This document shows, one piece after another, positions 31,482-51,313 of a stretch of DNA of 64,000 nt. The stretch spans positions 186,001 to 250,000 of the forward strand of contig JBBPEB010000005.1 of assembly GCA_039096225.1 (NCBI GenBank), given 5' to 3'. This DNA is from Blastocystis sp. Blastoise. Its lineage: Eukaryota; Protista; Bigyra: Opalinata. The notes beneath the pieces are model-generated. The model had not been told where the DNA came from. It searched no databases and saw nothing but the letters and a program-made list of their open reading frames with translations. The position numbers and the translations under genes were made by a program. Each line of letters begins with the position of its first letter. The first letter of the stretch is position 1.

Positions 31482-33984
31482 GGTTTAAATTGGATAATAA
31501 ATTATTTTTTTAAAGATTGTTTTTTTATTCCCATAGAAATCCGTTTCAGAAAAAAAATTGTTGTTAGCATCTTGTGATGAATAGAATTGAGTTCCTTCTG
31601 CGTCATAAAGTTTAAATTTTGAACTTTATTTGATTGTCACAACATAATGAAAGTATGTTTTTTATATGTCAATATCTCTTCCATTTTCATTCTGGCATTA
31701 AAATGGTGAAATAAATCATAATGACAATTTTTTGACCGTTTATTTGAGAATTTCGCATAATATCCGCTATTATTATTCCTTAATTCATTGTATTATTATC
31801 ACTTTATTAATATAGAAGAATAGTGAAAGTTTAAATTGTTGATGAATTGTAATTATTAGTTTTTTGTAATAGGGGAAGATCCATGATGTTTCAAGTTCTT
31901 GTTTATGCATATTTATATAATTTTAGTTACAAAATTCATATGAAAATATTTTTTCAAATGAAAAAACATTTTTTTGTATGAAAGAAAATATATCAAATCT
32001 ATGTACGATTGATTGATTGCTAGAATAATGTAATATTATGTATGAAACAAACAAAAAAATATATTTGAAATAAATGACTAAATAAAAAGGAAAAATAAGT
32101 ATATAATAATTTTTTAGTTTAAGAAATTGACTGAAAAAGAGTTAGATGTGCACTATATTTTATAGAAAAATGTTTTTTGTGTGTATATTACATACTTGAC
32201 ACATATGTAATTATAATTTTTGAATTTGGAATTGTTGTTCAGATACCATGACAAGTCATTATTAATATTTTCTTTAAATTAATGAGTCAAAATATATAAG
32301 TTAGCATGTAAGTCAATTTAAAAGACAATAAATTAGAAAATAACGTTATAGTTTTTCTTTGATAGCTTGTTTGAATAGTGAATTGCTTTATACTTTGTGA
32401 TATCGTCATAGAAAAACTGTGATTCGTCAATATCAGTATTCAATATTTTATTATATTCAAATGACCTACTTGTTTGATGGATCATGTAAAATAAATGTCA
32501 AGTTTAAATTAAATAGTGAGATTCAATGTCTACTGCATTCCCCATCAATTGTTATTATAATAATAAATGAAAATAATAAAAAATAATGAATCTTTGAAAA
32601 AACACTTAATAAAAACAATTCTTAAAACCAGAGATTCTTTGAGTTTAATGACTTGCTGAACAGAATCTCTTGATATTGTTCATCCAGTGATTTTCAAACT
32701 CTACTTATCTGCTAGTCTCAGGGTGTGCCAAAACTGCGCTTTAAGCGCAAAGTGCGCTTTTCGATGTTGTTTTTGCGCTTAAATCTTTTATTTCATTTTT
32801 CTTTTAATTTTTATAAATCTACATAGAATAAAACGTTTAATAATTTTTAGAGGATCGAGATAAGCTCAATAATGATGTTTTTGACATTTTACACGAGGTT
32901 TGTGTTTGTTGATGTAATTTGATTTGTTGTTGAATAAATAATAACCTTACACATATTATAATTAGAGAGCAAATTGAATTTTTTAGCATTTTTAGAATGT
33001 TAATCATGTAGTTATAATGATTGATTGTCTTTAAGTATTTAACAATTAGGAAAAAAGCGTGATTATGTGTAGATCTTAATAATATAGTAGTAGTAGAATC
33101 ATAATAGCAATACATGCTTCAAATTTTTACAAAACTTTGAATTCTTTTAAATTGGCTAAATACTGATTATTAGTGGTCAAAAAATTTTCAAACTCAGCTC
33201 ATCAAGACGCATTAATTTACACACTTTTCATGAAAAAAAGACCGGGTGACATAAAAAAGTAATTCATTCATTGACTATTATACTATGACATGACAGTTTT
33301 TAACTTAAAACATATTATTTTGATATATAATGTATAAATGTTTTGAAATAAGTCATCTAAGAAGATTTTTGTGACACATGTTGTGACAGATACATGACTT
33401 AAAAGTTCATAAGTCATCAAATAACAACAAGTATGATTCCTATATTTGACTATTTGTGTTAATTTGGGTGACAAATAAAAATTATTTTGTGACAAAAGTC
33501 AATTGCTTAAGATATTCTTTTGTATATTATTTTAAAGACTTTTATTTATGTTTATAATGAAAAATAATGTCAATAAATACTAAAAAATATTATAAAAAAT
33601 AATAATGTAATTAAAAAGTTTTTATTTTTATAAAATATCATGAAGTAGTCTTGTAGGGACTGTACAGATACATCCTGACAAGTAATAAAAATTAAATAAA
33701 CGAAAAGCATATTAAAATATTATTTTTCAAAAATCAAACAAAAAACAATAAAATGAACAAAAGCTGGATTTGAAAAAACAATACGTCCAACAAAATGATT
33801 TTTAATAGCCTTATAAAATGGTTTTAAAATGTATTTTATATGTAGAATAAGTCACACAACACATTTATAATATTTATATTATAAAATATATTGTTTTTAT
33901 GTTTAAAAATAAAAAAATAAAAAAACGGTTAGTAGTCACTAGCTTTGCAATTATTATATGACTTGATGAAAAATATTATAAGGG

Positions 33985-34063
33985 AGTTGTTTGGTCAAAT
34001 GGTCAGTGCGTATAAAATTTTTACATAGTGGACGGATCGAATCTTACGAGGAACTATTTTTTT
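33985..34063 (+). pseudogene. Degenerate tRNA-like / Pol III promoter relic 1
   Basis: A-box-like TGGTCAAATGG (33992), B-box-like GGATCGAATCT (34034) and a following oligo-T. The stems are too mismatched to fold a functional cloverleaf. Confidence 0.4.
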
Positions 34064-34347
34064 AAACTTTTTCTTTTGACTGCTATTTACAATGATTTTA
34101 TTTAAAATCAACTTTGTTTCATTTTTATTATCTGTAAACATTATTTACATCATTGATATCTGCTTTTTAGTTTAGAATCAACATATCAACAAACTTTTTT
34201 TTCAAAAAATAGTAATTATTGTTTAAAAACAATTCTAAGTATTTCTAGAATGTTATAAATGTAATAAAAGAGCATAAATATAATATTTGAAGATATCAAA
34301 TAATTTTAAACTTATTATATAGAACACATGAAAAAATAAAATTGAGA

Positions 34348-34425
34348 AATCGGTTGGTATAGTTGACCAGCGCTGTAGCTATTATGGTAATTGTCGCTGG
34401 ATCGAATCTCGCAAGAGGCATTTTT
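34348..34425 (+). pseudogene. Degenerate tRNA-like / Pol III promoter relic 2
   Basis: D-arm-like TGGT-ATAGTTG-ACCA, T-arm-like GCTGG-ATCGAAT-CTCGC and oligo-T after 34420. Shares GGATCGAATCT with relic 1. Confidence 0.4.
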
Positions 34426-34610
34426 ATTTTTATTTCTTGGAAAAACATCTTTTTATGAAACTTGTTCTTTTATATATTTATTTTGATTATCTCTTGATAC
34501 GATCATTTATTTTGGTTTAATTTAATTAACTTAGTTTATCAAGAGTATTCGCCTTGAGTATTTATTTTAATTTTTATAATCTGCTTTACTTAATTACTTT
34601 CTTTCTTTAG

Positions 34611-39700
<5,090 letters not shown>

Positions 39701-42700
39701 TTTTGTATATTAATGCTTAAAGTAATTATTTCATTGCTTCGTTTAGTTTGAATATGTTTGATGGCTTATATCAAATAAATGATAGCTTTATTTGCTCATT
39801 TATAAAGACATTTTTTTATATTTAGGTTAACTTTGTCAAAAATATTATGATTTATGGCCATGTATACAAATAAGGTGAAAAGCCTTTCATTCAGTCTGAT
39901 GACAAAACTCATGAGTATCATATTTTGTTACAAAAAACTTCCTTATGTGTTTGATAAATTCAGCAGAATTAAGCATGGCTGAAAAAGTGTCACAAAATTT
40001 GGTGGCAAGTGTCACCAAAGTCAGGAAAGGACTGACTATTTGATTATTTTTAAAACTTCAGTCATTCTTTAAAAATTTCAATGATAATTTCATTCTTTTG
40101 TTAAAGATTCAAATCAGAATAAGATTATTGCCTATAATATTTTTTCAAACTTGCTTTCTATCTGCTTTCTGAACTAATAATGGTTTATCATTAAGATTCA
40201 TATTGGTTTTTGTTGCATTGTGAACTCCTCTTAAATACTAGTCAATATCTACTACATGATGATTTCCCATTGTTTGTTGATTGCTTTGTTACGTACTTGC
40301 TCGTTATGATCAGTGTTCAATACACATATCTTACAATGTGCTACGTGATGGATACTTATCAGTTACTTATTCTTGGAATGATTACTTGCAATGTATAATT
40401 TTATGAATATTTACAGTTTGTTGCCTTCCATTTATTATTTACATCTGATTTGGTTACTCACCAAACTTCCTTACTTCTCTTCTTGAATTAGTATACTCAT
40501 TTTCTTTTTGTAACTTTGCGATTAATGAGATCTTTATTTATGTTGTTTGTATGTTTGATTTTATTCGACTAATGTGCTTTTGATTGCTTGTTCTACTTTA
40601 TAAGTGCTAATTATTTTGTTTTTGTTTTTTATTTTTCTGATACTTCCTTTTTTCATACTGTATTATAATGGTATTTATATATAACGATGACATTTTCTTA
40701 TAGATTTACTTATTATGAATTTTCTTATTCTTATTCTAGTATTTAATAAATACTTAAACACTTCATCTCTGCGATTAATACTTACTATGGTTACTAACAT
40801 ACATAAGTTTCTACTGAAGATAGTAGCAGATTAGTAACAATTGATGTTTATTTCTTTTCATCCTTAAATCCTTTTGTCTATATTACAATATTATCATGTA
40901 CTCTTATTCTATCAAGTTTACTATTATAAGTTTTTGAATGTTTTAGTATCTTATTGTGTAATTCTTTAATATGCTATTATACAGGAAAGTATCTATATGA
41001 TATTTCTTTGTTGTAGTTTTCTGTATAAAATTTTTGAATTTCTTTTTATTCTTTGTATATATTTTCATCTTGGTTAATTATTCTTCAACTTCTCTTCATG
41101 TTATCGTTAGTCTACTATTATATATTGAATTTTTAGTTATAAACCTTATCTTATTTCCTTATCTTATTTCATCTTTTGTTCTTTTAAGGTATTATAGCAT
41201 TACATTAATTGTATTAGTTTTCTGGTTTTTCAGTCTCTTCCTATCTTCTTCGTATGGTATCTTTATATTTATTAGACTCTTCATTTCTTCTGGTGCTTTT
41301 CAATTATTATGTGATCATTCGTAATACTTCACCTGCATGTTCTTTTCCCTTTATTAAAGAGTTTCTAGATGTGCTATTTTTATATTACTTTTATATTATC
41401 CTTAGTTGATATTCCTTTTTCTCCTATGATAGAATTCTTTATGTTCTTATGTTATTCTAATAGTCGTTTCATATTTCTCTATTAAACATACTATGAGATT
41501 TAATGACGATTTTCTTTTCCTTTAATAATTACAAATTCCTCATTATTATATATTATTATATATCTTAGTTTTATTATTCTAACAGATTTATTTTTATATT
41601 TGTTTCTATAATTGAAAACATACTCAATTAATTTATTTTCATATTTCATTCAAATATACTCTTCATATACATATTCATATCCTTCATTTATGGTTTTCTT
41701 CGTTTTCTCATGTTCTATATATTATCCCATGGTCTACTTGTTTTTGTGCCTATTTTTAATCCTATACTTCCTCATTATCTCTATTTCTTTATCCACTTTT
41801 CTTTTATTTCTAGTGCTTCTATTGTGTATATTGTGTGCTCATTATTAGACTTATTCATTTTAATACTGCTTCATCATTATCTCTCTTCATATTCTTTAAT
41901 GCTCATGTTTATTGTATTTCCTATTTACACAGTTATTATTTCAGAAGCATTTTCCATTTCTTGTCTAAATAATATGGGTTTGAATATTTTTATTAGTCCT
42001 ATTTCTTACTATCGTTTTTTATAATTCTTCTCGTTCGTTTCCTTTCTTTTTCTTTCCAACAATTTCTCTCTTGGCACTACTCATCATGGATTTTAGTAAT
42101 CAAAGTTAGGATTTGTTCTCATTGTTGTATTACTATTATCTATATACCACAAAAGATATTTTTATTATTTCTCTTCATTCTAAGGTTTTGCTCTTTTTGT
42201 TACTTAAACATATTTATATGGCTACTCTTATTTATTATTATTGTGTACATTCTCTTCTTCTTATTTAATTTTTTATAAAAGCCTAGTATCTACACCTTCT
42301 ATTCCTTCTATTCTTTCTCATTTCTAATTACTCTCATTTTCCAAAAATGATATAATTATATAATAGGATCTATGTCTCCATATTTCTTTCGTACTGTTAT
42401 TTAATAAAATACTATCTCTATTTACTTTAAACCATTTCAACTCCCTTTAACTTATTATCTATATACATCTTACATTCATGCTGATATGAATACTATAATA
42501 CTATTTGTATTTCTTCTATTTTGTTGAATACGGTTGAGGTAGTTCTCGAATTGTTTATTTTCTAAATTTATTTTCATTTCTATTACTTTAGATATTATAT
42601 CTTCTTAAGTGCATATGTACATAATTAATATGCTTATATATATTTACACCTGCTTTTTCCGTTATCAGCCGTTACTTCATATTATTTATACAATGTCTAA

Positions 42701-44126
42701 CTATTATATACAATTTACTCCGTTTGTTCTTTTACTCATGATGATATAATATAGAAATCAACTTCTTATTACTTCTTATGGTTTATTTATTGTATTTCTA
42801 TTTATAGATTTATATATATTTTTATACGAATATTGTTCTCTCTTCATGTTATTGTCTTTAAAAATATACTAAAAATAATTATTATCGTCTCTTCTACTCA
42901 TTTATCACTGCCGATTATAAATTCAGTTGATATATGCATTCTTCCTTCTTCTTAACTTCAAATTTTATTTACAAGTTTTTAGTTATCTTCTTTATGATCT
43001 ACATATATAAATATATTCTCATTAAGTCTATGTCAATCTTTCCAATAATTTTTCTTCTGATAATCTTTCAAATGCTAACCTTTATATAATATCATGAATC
43101 TTAATCTAATACTTATTTCATGCTATTATAATATAAAATCCACATTACTTTCTATTATATCATATATTCTAATACTCTTTCGGATATATATAATCCCTCA
43201 TATGATACTTAATATAGATATAACACATCTTGCTCTTTCCTTTTGAATTCATGTATAAATATAAAATTGTTGGTGTAAACGATTTAAGATTCCACTTTAT
43301 ATATATGTTTTGGAAAATAGTATATTCTTTAGGAACCAATTGTTATCACTCTCTTTGTGATATTTGATTGATAAGTCAGGTAAATGATTTTAGTAGTTAT
43401 TTGGTTCTTTCTATTGATACATTATGATTGAAAATATATTTTGCTATTTATTTATATATTTAATCTTCTTGATTAGATATACTATTTGATTTAAGAAGAG
43501 TATACTTTATAGTTGTATATTATACTTTTGATTGAATAAAGATTCTTATTAGTATTGGATATTGTTTTAAAGTATTATACTAGAGAGATTAGTATATATG
43601 AAATAATTACTTCTAAAATAATATTTATTTTTCATATAAGTAATAATATTTCTCAGTTATTCGTTTGATCTGAATATAATAGTACTTGAAAAAGAATATA
43701 ATTAGAAAAATAATTGAAACAAGCGTTTCACGACTGGCTACGCCAGCCTACGCTTGAGTTTAGATAATTATTATCTCTCAATTGTTATATCTTACATTGA
43801 ATTTTAAAAAATGAATATTTATTCTTATGTTTTTGTTATTCATTTCTGTTTTTATTTTTTTTTTTTAGGATTAAAACTATTTCATATTTTATAAAATATT
43901 ATTTCAATTGCTTTTAATTGTTATCTTCTAATCTTAATTTTCAATTTAGTATTTTAAATAATTTAATTCATACATATTGATAATTCTTACTTAACATTCT
44001 ATATGTTTTTGAGTATTATTTCCTTTTTTTTTTTTAATATTCTTTTTAGCCATTTTTATTATTGATTATATATATTTATTGTTTATCAATGATAATTAAT
44101 TAACTCTTGTGTTTTATTTTTGATCT

Positions 44127-44311
44127 TATTTCTATTTCTATTTCTATTTCTATTTCTATTTCTATTTCTATTTCTATTTCTATTTCTATTTCTATTTCTA
44201 TTTCTATTTCTATTTCTATTTCTATTTCTATTTCTATTTCTATTTCTATTTCTATTTCTATTTCTATTTCTATTTCTATTTCTATTTCTATTTCTATTTC
44301 TATTTCTATTT
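44127..44311. repeat. (TATTTC)n hexamer microsatellite, ~30 units, inside the transposon
   Basis: Uninterrupted run; it produces the spurious ISISIS and FLFLFL ORFs. Confidence 0.95.
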
Positions 44312-45149
44312 AGTTTTTAGTTTTCAATATTAATTCACTTTTCTTTGTTATTTCATTTATAACTTTCTATGTATTTTATCAATTCATTTAGTTTTATAAA
44401 TATTTAGTATTTTAAATAATATCAATATGATTATAAAATACTTTTTCTTTTAAAACATATTATTATCACTTATACCCTACCTTTAAATATTTATGTTTTA
44501 TTTGAATTAGTCTATATAATTATTATTGTGAGAAATAGCTTATTCTCTTGTCTAAAAAAAACATTATATATTCTTTTCATATATTGTTTTGTTTTATTTT
44601 TAAAATATTATAATTTTGATATCTATTTGTTTTTTTATATTTTATCCTTTCCTTTTATATATACTATTATATAAATATTTTAGAAATTTTATTATACAGC
44701 TTTTCTCAATTAATAAATGTTTAATTATATAAATAGTAATCATATCTTGATATTATTTGATAAATATTATAATTTTTCTTTTATTATACTTATTTTAGTT
44801 TGAATTATTAATACAAAAGTACTCTTAATAATTAAAAGATATTTATTACTTTATATAATAAACAAAAAAATTAGAGTCTTATTTTAATATTTATCATTAA
44901 TAGAATCTATTCGTTTTAAGTAAAAGAGAATATTTATAGAGAAATTATCTTTTCATTATTTAAAATTAATTAATTCAAGTTTAATTCAATTTTTATAGTG
45001 TTATCAAAATCATTCTAGAAATAAAAAATAAAAACTAAAATATAAAACAAAAATTACATTTCATTTCATAACTAAATAGATTTAAATACTTTGGAAACTT
45101 TACCTATTATACATACAATATAGCTTCTAAAACAAATAAGTTATCATAA

Positions 45150-45900
45150 AAAAACTCTAAAAGACTGTAACGTTTTTAAATACATATACTCACTTTTATT
45201 TTAACTAATTTTATATTCATATACATATATATTTGATTTATTATTTTAATTTGTAAAAAATAACTTGAATCTCTTTTGTTTTAAGTCACAATTACAAAAA
45301 ATGAGTTCTTTTGAAAGACAAAAAACATTCTTTAAACAATAATAATTTTGTATTTAGTGACATAAAAACGTATTGTACTGTTTTAGAAACAATTAAAATC
45401 TTTTTACCCATTTTAACACTCCTATCAAACAGTCAACCATGTTTAATTAAACTAATTTTTAATATTTTATATTCTATAATAAGTCTATTTATTATTATTA
45501 TAAAAAGTGACTTGAATCTCTTGACATAACTATTGTAATTCTAAAGAATCAAATTTTTGAACAACTCAAAATGTTTATTTATTGTAGATTTTAATATGAA
45601 ACACTCATAAAACACTCAATATATACTTATTGTAACCATTTTAGAAAAATAGACTCATTTTAACATTTTGGTCAAACACACAACCACCTTTATTTCAAAC
45701 AATTCTTTTATTATTATAAACATTAAACACTCTAATACTCATTTTTATAAAAAGTGTATTGAATCTCTTCACTTAAGACAGTCAAACAGACAATTCAAAA
45801 TTATTTTACCCTTTAAACTCATTATAAAGTGATAATATTTATAGAATTGCTTTGATATGTGGTTTAGGACATATTTAACTACTTTTTTCAAAATTATGAG
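45150..45900. repeat. Degenerate 247-bp tandem repeat, ~3 copies
   Basis: TGAATCTCTT at 45266, 45513 and 45760 (exact 247 spacing). ATTTTAACA...TCAAACA...CAACCA at 45410 and 45657. Boundaries are approximate. Confidence 0.75.
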
Positions 45901-46039
45901 TCAACATGTGCATATACTCATTCACTCGTCTAACCCAATTTTGACTAATTTTTTGAGAAATGCAATACATATAAGGTCTAGTTTACAAATATATAAAAAT
46001 TATTTGTCAAATATGAATTTGATTTGTCAACTTTCGGAA

Positions 46040-47500
46040 AATTTTTAGAAAAACGATTTTTCAATTTTCAGTTTTTTAACATGTTATACTATTGACTCTA
46101 CTGAACTCATTTCTTAATTAATTTTAAATGTTAAAATTTATATCGTTAATATATTTTATTCTCTATATTTATTTGTTAAAATTATAATAAATAATAAAAT
46201 ATTGACTGAGAAATTAAAACGATAAACTATACCCTTTTTTCAAAAAAAATAATTTTTATGTTTTGCATATATAATTTTTTTTCTCAAAAGTTATTTTATA
46301 TTTTGATAATATTTTTATAAATTTATAAGCTATAGGTTGTCTAGTTTATATATAAGTTTTATTTATTTTTTAAAAATTAATATTGATGGAGAAATTGTCA
46401 AAATAAACTATAGTATCAAAAATGTTTTCTTTTTTTAAACGATTTATTTCACTAATTAAAGACTAATAAAAGCATATTTATTTATTTAAAGCTTATTTAT
46501 GACATATACAACTCATAAAGACTCATAACTAACTTTTTAAAGCAAACATTGTCTGTATCAGTTCAACATGTTGTCTTAACTTTTTCAAATAAGTCACGTA
46601 CAGTGTCTATGAGTGGTTCTAAACACATATTAAAACGTTTTAAGAGTTTATTGAGTTAACATTGTCTGGTGATCTGTTGTTAAAGTCTTTTAAAAACAAA
46701 ATAAAATTGTAAAATATGTTTATTTTGGTATGTAGTTTTTAAATATAAAGTCAAATGTCAAATAAAATTGTTAATGATGAAAATATAAACAAAAAACAAA
46801 TGAAAACTTTTTAAGAAAATTTTTTGAAAGTCATTTTTTATTGAGTTCAACTATTGACTCTTGTCACCTGAGTTTTCAATTAATTAAAAAAATTGAAAAA
46901 TATGTATCTGCTATGACATGTCTAGTTTCTAAATATGTTTTAACTTTTTTATTTTATTAAGAATTGATTGAGAAATCACAATAACAAACTATACCCTTTT
47001 TTGAAAATTTTCATTTTTATGTTTTTCATATAAATGAATGTTTCTCAGTCAATATTCAATATTTAGATAAAATAAAAAATATGTATCTGCAATAGCTTAT
47101 CTTAATTATAATTATACTTTTATTTTTAAAAAATACCCAAAACTCAAGGAGAAAGACGAATAACAAACTATACTATCAAAACATCAAAATTTCTATTATC
47201 AAATATTTTCTTATTAAAACTTTTTAAACAACTAAAAGATATACTTATGACATGTATTGATTCTAAATAACTTGAATAAACTCAAATAAGTTTATAAAGA
47301 AGGAATGTGTCGGATATCAGTTTGTCTTTTGTCGTTATTTAAAGGAATTATTGTTGTTTTAGAGTAGTTGAGGTCAGTATCATTGCATATGAAATGTTTT
47401 TAGAGTTTATAGTTAGTGATGTGTGTATTGATATGTTGTCAAGTTCTTAATATAAACAAATTTACCCGTCAAAACTATTCATTAGACTAACCCGTCAATA
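46040..47500. repeat. Degenerate ~762-bp direct duplication, each copy containing ~180-bp subunits
   Basis: ACTATTGACTCT at 46088 and 46850. AAACTATACCCTTTTT at 46224 and 46986. AAACTATA-N-TATCAAAA at 46405 and 47165. Confidence 0.8.
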
Positions 47501-48164
47501 AAAGTCAATTTTATAAAAATAAATATAAAGAATGTGAGTAGATATAGAAAAAATAAGAAAACAATAAAAAATAAAAAACGAAAAATAAGTGTTTTTATAA
47601 AAATGAAAAATATTGGATAAAATAGAAATAATCCAATAATTTTGGTTAAAATTTTGTGCGAAAATGGTTTTTTGCATTTTTTAGCCAGAAATTTAGAGTT
47701 TTCGAAAAATTTCTTTAACAGTCATTTTTAGAATTGTGTTCCGGATTTTATGATGTTATTTTTATTTTATAAAAGTTAATAACAAAGTCAATAAATGTGA
47801 AAGTGTGTGAGACACCGTACGCTACATGAACTAAATTAAGGATATTAATATAGATAAAAATTATTAAGGAATAGTGATTCTAATTAAGAAACTATATACT
47901 ATTGATATAATCAAATATATAAAGGAATATTCAATGTCATCTATTTATAATTATATTTAAAAGATAACAGTATATCTTCTTGAGTTAATTAAAACAATAC
48001 AAATTATAATGTAACAATAAAACATTATGGAATACAAATAGTTAATATAATGAAAACAATATAAATATATAAATATTAATAGTAAAAGAAATCAATGTAC
48101 TTTGTAGTATAAATACAGTAATTAAGTAGTTGGATTAGATTAGTGATTTTGTTGCTAGATGTTA

Positions 48165-50900
48165 TCAATCGAGTTTCTTTTTCTTTAATTTATCTATATA
48201 TAATTAAGAATAGATTCTATATTATGTGAATTATGAATATAATACTTATAATATACATACGCTCTAAAACAGTAGTTATAAGTGATGAAGAATCAATGAT
48301 ATCAGAAGTTAATCCAATTGTCATTTGGGTTGTTGGATTAATAGTGTTTCTGTATTTGTTTTTTATATACACGAGATGACTGAAACCGCTCTCACAGAGA
48401 TATGAAGTTGCAAAGGGAAGAAAACATTTCTTGGCTATATCATATAATAATGGAAAACGACTCTTATGGCTTATATAGAACTCATCTATTGGTACGTTAT
48501 TAAATTCTTCTCTACATGTTTTATCAGCAAGTAAACAGAAATACTCTTCTTTAACATGAAACTCCATTTTATTTTCGTCAGCTACTTTTGAAAATGGATT
48601 AGTAATCCAATATAAAGAATGATCAATAAGATTAGTTGTTGGTGTATTTTTTGGTTTTTTTATGTTACTATTCGTTTTCTTCTGCTTTTTATTCTTTTGT
48701 ACTTCTCCTTGATTTGTATTATTACTTATTTCATTTGGAATGATTGCCCCAAGAGTTATTATACAATTGATATTAGCCTGAATTATATTTATATTACTAA
48801 TGATTCCATTGTATTGTCCTTGAATACTACTATTAGGGAAATTATTAAGAACACCAGAAATACTACCTAAAGTGTATCCATATACTAAATATGGAAAGTC
48901 AATTCTAATCGTTACTTGAGTTTCTATTAATTGCTGAGTAACTATGTCAACATAGGTTATTAAGCCATTTACAACTCCATTTGGAGATACGCAACCTTGT
49001 AATGATCCAAGAATATTAAATTGGTTTGATACTACTGATGTATTGTTATTAACATTACTATTCACTTCATGAGATATATTTGATGTATTATGTGTATTTT
49101 CTTGGTCTATTAAATATTCATTAAGGTCTTGAAGATACGATTCATCACTACCAATATAATTTAGTATTTCTGGGAAATAATTCAGTAAATTACGTCGAAG
49201 AGTTATTAGATGATTTTTGATATAAAATATGATTGAATTAATATCAAGCTTGGTTGTAGATACATAATCCTTAAGTTTCGTAAATGATGAATAATCGTTA
49301 TTATTTATTAGTCTTTCTAATCTCAACGATAATTTTATAAATAAATCCTTCATAATGTCTATTAACCCAAATATATATCTATGCTGTCCTTGCATTGATT
49401 TATTACAATCATAGAATAAACTGGTAACATCCTCAAGGTATAACATTGAAGCTATGAAGTTAGTATCAATAATGGTGTTATATAAGTCCTTCTTTTCTTT
49501 ATCCTTTTTTATTACTAGTGTTATTCCATTTCTAAGTAAATTAAATCTTTTAATTGATGAATGGCATGAAAGCCATCTTGTAGGGCAATAAAGGAGAAGT
49601 TTATAACTTCTAATATTTTTTTCCTTTTTTTCTTCCTTCTTATCATTACTATAAACTTCATGAATATTATTATCTATATTATTATCTGTATCAGATGTAT
49701 CTAAAAGGGATTCAACTACTTTATTATATTCTATCTCTAAAGAAGATATATTATTAGGGGAATCAGGTATGTTATCTTGAGGAGAGAAGATAGAAGAGGT
49801 TAATGAATATTCATTATCAATATTGTAATTATTGGATTCGTCTTGTCTAACAGCAGACTTCTTTATATATGAAATTATCTCAACAGCACTTTTGAATATA
49901 TTAGTGAAGTATTTTGGTAAACAGTTTACACAGAGTTCTTCTCTATGAAGAAAACAGTGGATGAACATACAATTCTTATTCTTCTCTAGTACTCGTGTTT
50001 TGAAGGAGTTTTTGTCTCCATTCATATTCGAAGCACCGTCAAAAGTAGCTGATACGCAATTATTCCACAGAAGGTTATTATTATTAAAGAAATTATCTAC
50101 CATGTTAAATATATTATCACCTGTTTTGGAACTAATCTGAAAAATACTTAAAAATGATTCAGTAAACTTTTTATTATATTCGTATCTAGCATAAACGAGT
50201 AAATAGGATTTCATTTCTATGTCAGTTGACTCGTCAAGCTGAATAGAAAATGATCCTGATTGTCTTATCCTATTTATTACTTCTTGTTGAATTGTCAAAG
50301 CAATTTCATCACTTTTTCTTTTGATACTGCTTGAGGATAACGGAAGATTAGAAAGGACTTTGACATTCTTTAACCTTTCATATTCTTCAATAATAGGTTT
50401 AACTAATTTTTCTCCAGTTCTGTAGCTGTATCCATTCTTTGAAATGGAGTAGGCGATGAAATATGAAAGCTTACTGGATAAATCTGAAAAGCTAAAGAGA
50501 GAATTTGAGTATTCTGTGTTTTCATTATGATCTTTTAAGAGTTCTTGAATGTCATCATATGTGTATTTGCTTAACCCATGTTTATTCTTGAAATGAGTGA
50601 AGAGTTTTGAGGCTTCATAACCTTTACACGTGAGAGTAGACTCACAGATTAAACAAAAATAGGAGTTTTTTGTTAATTTTTTAAATCCATAAACAACTGG
50701 ATTGGCATTATATCTTTTAACTCCTTCTTTTACTTCACTATAATATTTGGATTTAGGATTAATGTCTGGTTTATTATTCGTTTCTTCTGTAATTATGTCA
50801 TCATCTTTTTTTTTTTTCGTCTGTTGTAGACTTGTCAATCTATATATATATATATATATTACTATTAATATACTTGTAATTTTTTAAAGTACTGTTCCAT
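48165..50900 (-). CDS. hAT transposase, Buster/ZBED5/SCAND3-like; 3 exons; one extra A in an A12 run as assembled
   Basis: BED finger CLIC...HFKNKH. Catalytic D (QLDESTD), D (TFDGASNM) and E (YLCESGFS). CxxH motif HCFLHRE, TRWLS, WITNPF, and dimerisation domain LPFATSYLCESGFSHLVYIKNKYRN. Exon 1 (50874-50900) reads MEQYFKKLQ, followed by a 34-nt intron. A 3' intron gives a terminal exon HKLKKKKLD and TGA at 48165-48167. Confidence 0.92.
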
Positions 50901-51313
50901 GTGTTTAAACAATAAAAAAAGTTTATCTAATATAGAATGTTCTTTTTGGTTTAGCAAAACATTTTCCCTTATATTTTTGTTTTTCCCGTGTTTTCATCAC
51001 TTAAAATAACTATGAAAATCACGGTAATAAAAAAGTAACTTTGTTATTTAAGCGCAAAAATTTTGGTCCTTTCGCTTAACGAGTAACTACGTGGTGACCC
51101 CTGTCTGCTAGAATTAAAACTCCAATGAATTATTACTTTATGAATACGTCTTTATTTACAAGAATATGATTGGATGAAAAGGACATGAACATATGGCTAC
51201 ATAAGACGGTTGGACTCACATATGACTGGACTCTTTCAACTAAGACTCAATCGCTTCTTCTCTATATATACAACTTTTTTTCAAGTTTGACTGTGTGTAA
51301 TTGATCTTATACG

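Follow-up and report, generated by a model that had tools for sequence, protein, structure and literature searches.

A large hAT transposon family in Blastocystis sp. Blastoise carries host gene fragments probably acquired by nesting

The subject of this report is a transposon of the hAT superfamily located in a 64,000-bp stretch of the genome of Blastocystis sp. Blastoise (assembly GCA_039096225.1, contig JBBPEB010000005.1, positions 186,001 to 250,000 of the forward strand), referred to below as the window. Genome-wide searches covered the whole assembly of this tortoise gut strain, which comprises 33.34 Mb in 34 contigs, and positions are those of the window unless another contig is named. 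A first-pass annotation had proposed a protist hAT element that encodes a transposase and moves as one unit with fragments of host genes, and this proposal is borne out by 18 colinear pairs of element ends. We consider it likely that these represent an autonomous 16.2-kb hAT family of at least 18 copies that was enlarged by nesting, and that the composite then spread recently as a unit.

Ends, copies and transposase of the hAT family

The element in the window spans 32719-51103 (18,385 bp) and is bounded by the pair of CAGGG termini recognized in the first pass, here placed at 32719-32723 and 51099-51103. The terminal inverted repeat is short, with 5 bp perfect and matches at 8 of the first 12 positions, and it is accompanied by the perfect 15-bp subterminal inverted repeat that had also been reported; a comparison of the terminal 200 bp at either end gave no longer perfect one. 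The shared TTAAGCG motifs were likewise recovered and start at 32741, 32776, 51048 and 51073. An 8-bp direct repeat, TCTGCTAG, is present on both sides as described, but its left copy is offset by 3 nt from the terminus, so that the duplication of the window copy is imperfect. The features of the hAT element proper are as follows.

32708-32715, plus strand: 8-bp target duplication, left copy, with three extra bases (TCT, 32716-32718) between it and the terminus
32719-33178, plus strand: hAT left arm, with the 5-bp perfect terminal repeat, GCGC and TTAAGCG subterminal motifs and one arm of the 15-bp inverted repeat (32770-32784)
48165-50900, minus strand: hAT transposase gene, 882 amino acids when spliced, with introns at 50873-50840 and about 48245-48194
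50901-51103, plus strand: hAT right arm, with the other arm of the 15-bp inverted repeat (51046-51060) and the terminal repeat (51099-51103)
51104-51111, plus strand: 8-bp target duplication, right copy

Matches of 98-100% identity were obtained across the genome for 18 left ends and 19 right ends, far more than chance would give, and these form 18 left-right pairs, the sister copies being mapped by match coordinates. Perfect, adjacent 8-bp target duplications, all different, were found in 16 of the 18 paired copies; the remaining two are the window copy and one copy on contig 16 that has no duplication. The flanks of the copies are unrelated to one another, while the interior is colinear at 97-100% identity. 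Sixteen copies measure 16,099-16,222 bp and one 22,709 bp, so the roughly 18.4 kb given in the first pass describes the window copy and not the family. In total, the family occupies 300 kb, or 0.9% of the genome. Taken together, the 18 end pairs, the colinear interior, the distinct duplications and the unique flanks dispose of the case that the first-pass annotation had named against itself, namely that each end is part of a different element.

These data also bear on whether the copies might be segmental duplications or assembly artefacts. The copies are almost identical, their homopolymer lengths vary from one to the next and the assembly was built on R9 nanopore reads (PMC10690189), all of which would fit such an origin. 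Assemblers do not, however, create a separate perfect 8-bp duplication for each of 16 copies, nor would unique flanks be explained, and we regard this possibility as extremely improbable.

Over 3.5 kb of the ends, sister copies show no more than single private substitutions, differences in homopolymer length and one site that splits them 9:10, and the window copy has three private substitutions. The near-identity of these end sequences argues that the hAT family is very young and has been amplified recently. The transposase gene is present in all 18 copies, with an uninterrupted frame in nine complete ones. A 6.5-kb insert at the position matching 42570 is shared by two copies, on contigs 16 and 22, the right flanks of which differ, and this suggests that the enlarged form has transposed at least once. 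The copy at contig 22:56001-67024, with an unpaired right end, is truncated 132 bp past the 6.5-kb insert, and the copy without target duplication, at contig 16:443718-459931, is otherwise full; both are possibly indicative of rearrangements between copies. The length of more than 20 kb that has been used to define giant transposons (PMC6431247) is not reached by the family at 16.2 kb, and a single copy attains 22.7 kb by nesting.

The left terminus is shared with a miniature inverted-repeat transposable element (MITE) of 332-333 bp that is present in 11 copies and that matches about 96 bp at the hAT left end at 85%. Its target duplications are perfect 8-bp repeats in 10 of the 11 copies and shifted by one base in the remaining one. 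These 11 matches had been considered as a sister family of hAT left ends, an interpretation that was rejected once they were recognized as the MITE.

Among 30 target sites, T was found at position 2 in 19 and A at position 7 in 19 (P about 0.003 each); for the large hAT alone, the corresponding numbers were 12 and 14 of 19 sites. Two target consensus sequences have been described for hAT elements, nTnnnnAn for Hermes and nnnTAnnn for Buster (PMC10512250, PMC3517528). The first of these, typical of the Ac family, is followed here as a bias rather than as a strict rule, whereas the central TA of the second occurred at 3 of the 30 sites compared with 4.2 expected by chance. Two of 16 reconstructed empty sites lie in frames that run on without a stop for 212 and 163 residues, and those insertions may interrupt genes. 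The window copy is inserted about 200 bp upstream of a gene (51314 onward) that by eye resembles a phosphatidylinositol transfer protein.

The transposase, annotated in the first pass as about 2.7 kb of coding sequence, was confirmed as a gene with two short introns. Its product is 100% identical to a protein recorded for Blastocystis sp. Blastoise. Alignments showed conservation of the BED finger, both aspartates, the CxxH and RW motifs and the catalytic glutamate, and the C-terminal dimerisation domain (PF05699) passes its cut-off. Thus, 8-bp duplications, short terminal repeats with subterminal motifs and the DDE, BED, CxxH, RW and dimerisation domains characteristic of the hAT superfamily are all present. 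A sequence search against Hermes gave no match, while the structural model of the protein matched Hermes in Foldseek (E = 2.7e-8). The best matches outside Blastocystis were proteins of the ZBED5/7/8/9 and EPM2AIP1 types at 25-30% identity, which we take to be Buster-family derivatives. The enzyme thus appears Buster-like, a description based on protein matches rather than on a tree, and we do not file it under Buster; it is paired with the Hermes-like target bias. Two large insertions in the protein, encoded at 48600-49150 (residues about 575-750) and 49600-49850, are found at the same positions in a 34%-identical paralog. For the 170-residue insertion, a search of the Atlas gave no match and the modelled pLDDT was <50. 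Judging from the near-identical copies and the intact frames, the enzyme would be competent for transposition.

Host gene fragments and the inner unit

The interior of the family comprises a segment that carries pieces of two genes and, next to it, a decayed region:

33179-40040, plus strand: inner mobile unit, which measures about 8.8 kb in the sisters, with GTGACA five times at 33246-33489, and TGTCAC twice and two hairpins at 39988-40037
33985-34425, plus strand: two stretches with A- and B-box-like words, within the left arm of the inner unit
35059-35907, plus strand: 5' piece of UTP20 that includes exons and introns and matches the contig 34 host gene at 85% identity
35908-38545, plus strand: piece of about 2.6 kb from a second, unnamed, intron-containing gene, with no match at the UTP20 locus
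38690-39596, plus strand: 3' piece of UTP20, matching that host gene at 95% identity
40041-43719, minus strand: decayed, stop-riddled segment, of which 41288-43710 matches DNA on contig 15 at 71-72%

The host gene fragment mentioned in the first-pass annotation therefore corresponds to pieces of UTP20 together with a piece of a second gene. The best genomic match of the UTP20_N family (E = 3.6e-41) was located within a 646-residue open frame on contig 34, and the more C-terminal UTP20 family (PF20416) matched that locus only, at 672-680 kb. Since the best UTP20_N match and the only matches of the C-terminal family coincide there, we identify the contig 34 gene, on these profile matches, as the parent of the UTP20 cargo. 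The element copies hold positions 3-269 of the UTP20_N profile, mostly within 1.85 kb that are gone from the window copy. In these copies the frame closes at 38967, while it stays open in the host gene, which means that the piece is frameshifted. For the second gene, a homolog at 30-50% identity was found in a metagenome, and a search of the genome revealed no parent locus. Searches with single cargo exons against Pfam, PDB and the Atlas yielded nothing decisive. The introns of the cargo are retained, which means that it was captured at the DNA level.

Fifteen more decayed copies of the UTP20 exon at 38690-39345, with 80-90% DNA identity, are scattered over contigs 3, 13, 14, 17, 18, 19, 25, 26 and 31, and several of these are near contig ends or paired 18-23 kb apart. 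It seems that UTP20 sequences were captured or spread more than once. The exons of the second cargo gene contain CCGCGG-centred motifs at 36740, 37100, 37885 and 37947, despite a GC content of 24%.

The first-pass annotation had further listed tRNA-like relics as part of the cargo. The A- and B-box-like words at 33985-34425 can be seen by eye, but the segment received no ARAGORN call and no Rfam match at E values up to 10, and it folded no better than shuffled sequences; we have accordingly rejected its identification as tRNA.

Sequences that begin exactly at 33179 recur at 15 loci without hAT ends, and the right tip of the inner unit (39957-40040) recurs at ten loci, nine of which pair it, in the same orientation, with the inner left end and again without hAT ends. 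Because the cargo lies in a unit whose two ends are paired in this manner outside of the hAT family, it probably arrived by nesting inside that unit rather than by direct capture. Five of the nine paired loci span 8.2-8.4 kb and are similar to the window unit at their ends only. Examples of the nine are contig 20:1051484-1059842, contig 17:776117-784386 and contig 24:893666-924756. The mosaic of UTP20 and the second gene was found at nine outside loci with 81-93% identity, and it is older than the hAT burst. The inner unit contains inverted clusters of GTGACA and TGTCAC, and transposase families of both the CACTA and the MULE type are present in the genome. As for the decayed segment next to it, the contig 15 relative of 41288-43710 directly adjoins a decayed transposase with 69% identity, and by this adjacency the segment is an old part of the hAT lineage itself.

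Alternatively, the hAT may itself have copied DNA of the UTP20 locus or of another element during gap repair, in which case 33179 and 40040 would be template-switch points. Such gap-filling capture, or transduplication, has been described for elements with terminal inverted repeats (PMC8277862), and no terminal repeat was detected for the inner unit. Moreover, the 3' piece of UTP20 shares 95% identity with the host gene and has no counterpart in the cargo copies outside the family, as if it had been added later, although the contrast between 95% and 85% identity may reflect nothing but the exon and intron content of the two pieces. On the other hand, 15 independent outside loci start to match at the same base and nine have both ends paired, and a random switch of template would hardly pick up the two ends of another family; we judge direct capture to be unlikely.

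Several observations weigh against nesting. An end-to-end alignment of the inner unit revealed no significant terminal inverted repeat, and the candidate 8-bp repeat that flanks it (33164-33171 and 40041-40048) is at a chance level of about 3%. Most outside loci in which the two inner ends are paired do not have the hAT cargo, while most of the cargo-bearing outside loci are without a matched right tip, which marks the inner unit as a mosaic in its own right. The genome search turned up no hAT copy devoid of the inner unit, and the positions of the outside copies are those of match coordinates.

Under the nesting hypothesis, a hAT element of about 7.4 kb would have taken in a gene-fragment-carrying element of about 8.8 kb that belonged to another family, after which the composite would have been amplified in one piece. 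The composite would mobilise itself, its own DDE transposase recognizing the short terminal repeats and the subterminal GCGC motifs, excising the whole unit and inserting it with an 8-bp duplication. This would conform to the general biology of hAT elements, in which excision is hairpin-mediated and insertion is staggered by 8 bp. The copy number may have risen by gap repair or by transposition during replication, and the lineage may be active at present. Later insertions would have enlarged single copies, by 4.1 kb in the window and by 6.5 kb in two others.

An insertion and losses in the window copy

The size of the window copy results from one gain and several losses relative to its sisters, at the following positions:

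43720-47846, no strand assigned: separate 4,127-bp mobile element with a terminal hairpin (43720-43756), a TATTTC microsatellite and internal repeats
38551-38685, plus strand: AAT tract, at which about 1.85 kb are absent, including the start of the UTP20_N domain; present in 17 of 17 sister copies
37067-37073, plus strand: junction lacking 47 bp that are present in 26 of 26 other copies of the segment
50806-50817, minus strand: run of 12 A that places the transposase start out of frame in the window copy; a run of 11 is in frame

The 4,127-bp element is inserted in the window copy only and has dispersed copies elsewhere in the genome, one of which is 100% identical, as well as at least 40 related ends. 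The microsatellite (44127-44311) and the repeat arrays (43.7-47.8 kb) that had been counted as hAT content in the first pass do exist, but they belong to this separate insert. Its single GC-rich terminal hairpin has a folding z score of -2.7, the end reads CTTG with no TC start, and the overlap at the empty site is at most 2 nt. A Helitron would be expected to show a TC start and a 3' hairpin with CTRR, or else short terminal repeats inserted at T|T, and to be linked to a RepHel gene. In 3 of 39 cases, the related ends were in the position expected relative to a RepHel gene. The insert is a candidate for a Helitron-like element.

In total, 1,960 bp have been lost. The largest piece, of about 1.85 kb, is missing at the AAT tract; a further 47 bp are missing near 37070, and about 68 bp in the interval from 38967 to 39640. 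The absence of the 47 bp has the appearance of a precise intron loss. The reading frame across the junction is continuous, as in the annotated spliced proteins and in a distant homolog, and DNA reads alone were used for polishing the assembly (PMC10690189 methods). The in-frame run of 11 A in the transposase gene was found in 11 of 19 hAT copies; given that R9 nanopore cells were used for the strain, the longer run of the window copy may be an assembly error.

It could also be argued that the cargo is kept for a benefit to the element or the host, for example if a fragment or a small RNA dampened UTP20 or if Pol III promoters drove transcription. Introns and reading frames can still be made out, proteins are called on the cargo in the public annotation, one intron seems to have been lost precisely in the window copy, and 45% of the words sampled from 33000-41000 are contained in a sequencing run guessed to be RNA. 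That run may, however, be DNA, only a frameshifted part of UTP20 is present, the window copy has lost most of the UTP20_N domain, and the near-identity of the copies is explained by recent amplification. We therefore consider a retained function to be very unlikely. A separate study of 2025 provided a poly(A) gut metatranscriptome, in which 18% of the sampled words of the same interval were present.

Nesting followed by amplification also differs from the vehicle for gene shuffling that had been suggested in the first pass. Its two ends did retrieve paired copies with different duplications, as anticipated, but the cargo was the same in every copy and not different as expected. Because all copies carry the same cargo and the UTP20 piece is frameshifted, the process is one of amplification rather than shuffling, and the gene pieces reside in an inner unit with a family of its own outside the hAT copies.

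Relationship to other cargo-carrying transposons

Transposase-bearing hAT elements of 9.5-14 kb that carry cargo are already known from fungi. The closest case is a histone H3-carrying hAT in Pseudocercospora fijiensis and Pyrenophora tritici-repentis, with 99 complete elements of 9.5-9.9 kb (PMC6710886). It resembles the Blastocystis family in encoding a transposase, in generating 8-bp duplications and in having amplified a host gene sequence in many copies, but it is fungal and smaller and has 20-bp terminal repeats and an intron-less H3 copy, whereas the cargo in Blastocystis is a mosaic with introns that seemingly arrived inside a second element. ToxhAT of wheat-pathogenic fungi, a 14-kb hAT-type element (PMC9594970), is similar in size and also has a cellular gene aboard. 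Its gene is intact and the element has moved between species, and no burst of 18 near-identical copies is reported in the text consulted, in contrast to the broken cargo amplified within one genome in Blastocystis.

Intron-containing mosaic fragments, multiple copies with distinct duplications and an unlinked parent gene are likewise seen in Pack-MULEs, Pack-TIRs and gene-capturing Helitrons. The reviewed elements of these kinds are non-autonomous and mostly 1-2 kb in size, with Pack-MULEs of up to 7 kb (PMC8277862, PMC6431247). The family described here shares the unlinked parent (contig 34) but has a transposase in 18 of 18 copies; it is the inner unit that works like a Pack-type element, whereas the outer hAT is autonomous. 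A comparable size class of cut-and-paste elements is represented by En/Spm (CACTA) families of the red alga Chondrus crispus, which were enlarged to 16-20 kb (cited in PMC6431247). These belong to another superfamily and, by the same account, owe their extra length to 4-5 open reading frames, compared with a nested unit with broken host genes in Blastocystis.

Elements of the hAT superfamily usually measure a few kb, and the Blastocystis hAT is several times longer. A literature search for giant hAT elements returned nothing relevant, which is not proof of a size record. As regards the enzyme, Buster elements and their domesticated kin (ZBED5/7/8/9 and EPM2AIP1) provide the best outside protein matches (25-30% identity) and have the same catalytic motifs, but the family differs from Buster in its T2/A7 target bias without central TA and in the two large insertions. 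What is new is therefore the host, the size, the nested build and the combination of a Buster-like enzyme with a Hermes-like target bias.

According to a review, the efficiency of natural cut-and-paste transposition falls above about 6 kb of cargo (PMC6431247). Despite this drop, the hAT reached 18 copies at a length of 16 kb, and an even larger form of it probably transposed at least once. It is possible, if doubtful, that we see a still-active lineage that moves 16-23 kb, grows by taking in cargo-bearing elements and amplifies fragments captured by another family, with a Buster-like enzyme that, given its two large insertions and Hermes-like target choice, may be suited to long cargo.

Transposon content varied little between Blastocystis strains according to the genome paper, in which hAT elements are not mentioned at all (PMC10690189). 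Our genome-wide transposase matches comprised about 50 to Helitron RepHel (most in frames of 1,200-1,680 residues), 28 to MULE, 37 to hAT and 4 to CACTA families. Judging from these matches, there is apparently a rich and recent load of DNA transposons that was not described in that paper (PMC10690189).

The creation of new host genes is not demonstrated by this family, and its interest lies elsewhere. It provides a clean natural series for the study of size limits, nesting and target choice in hAT elements. Blastocystis is a gut protist for which few genetic tools exist, and the hAT family is a candidate for a native vector in this organism.

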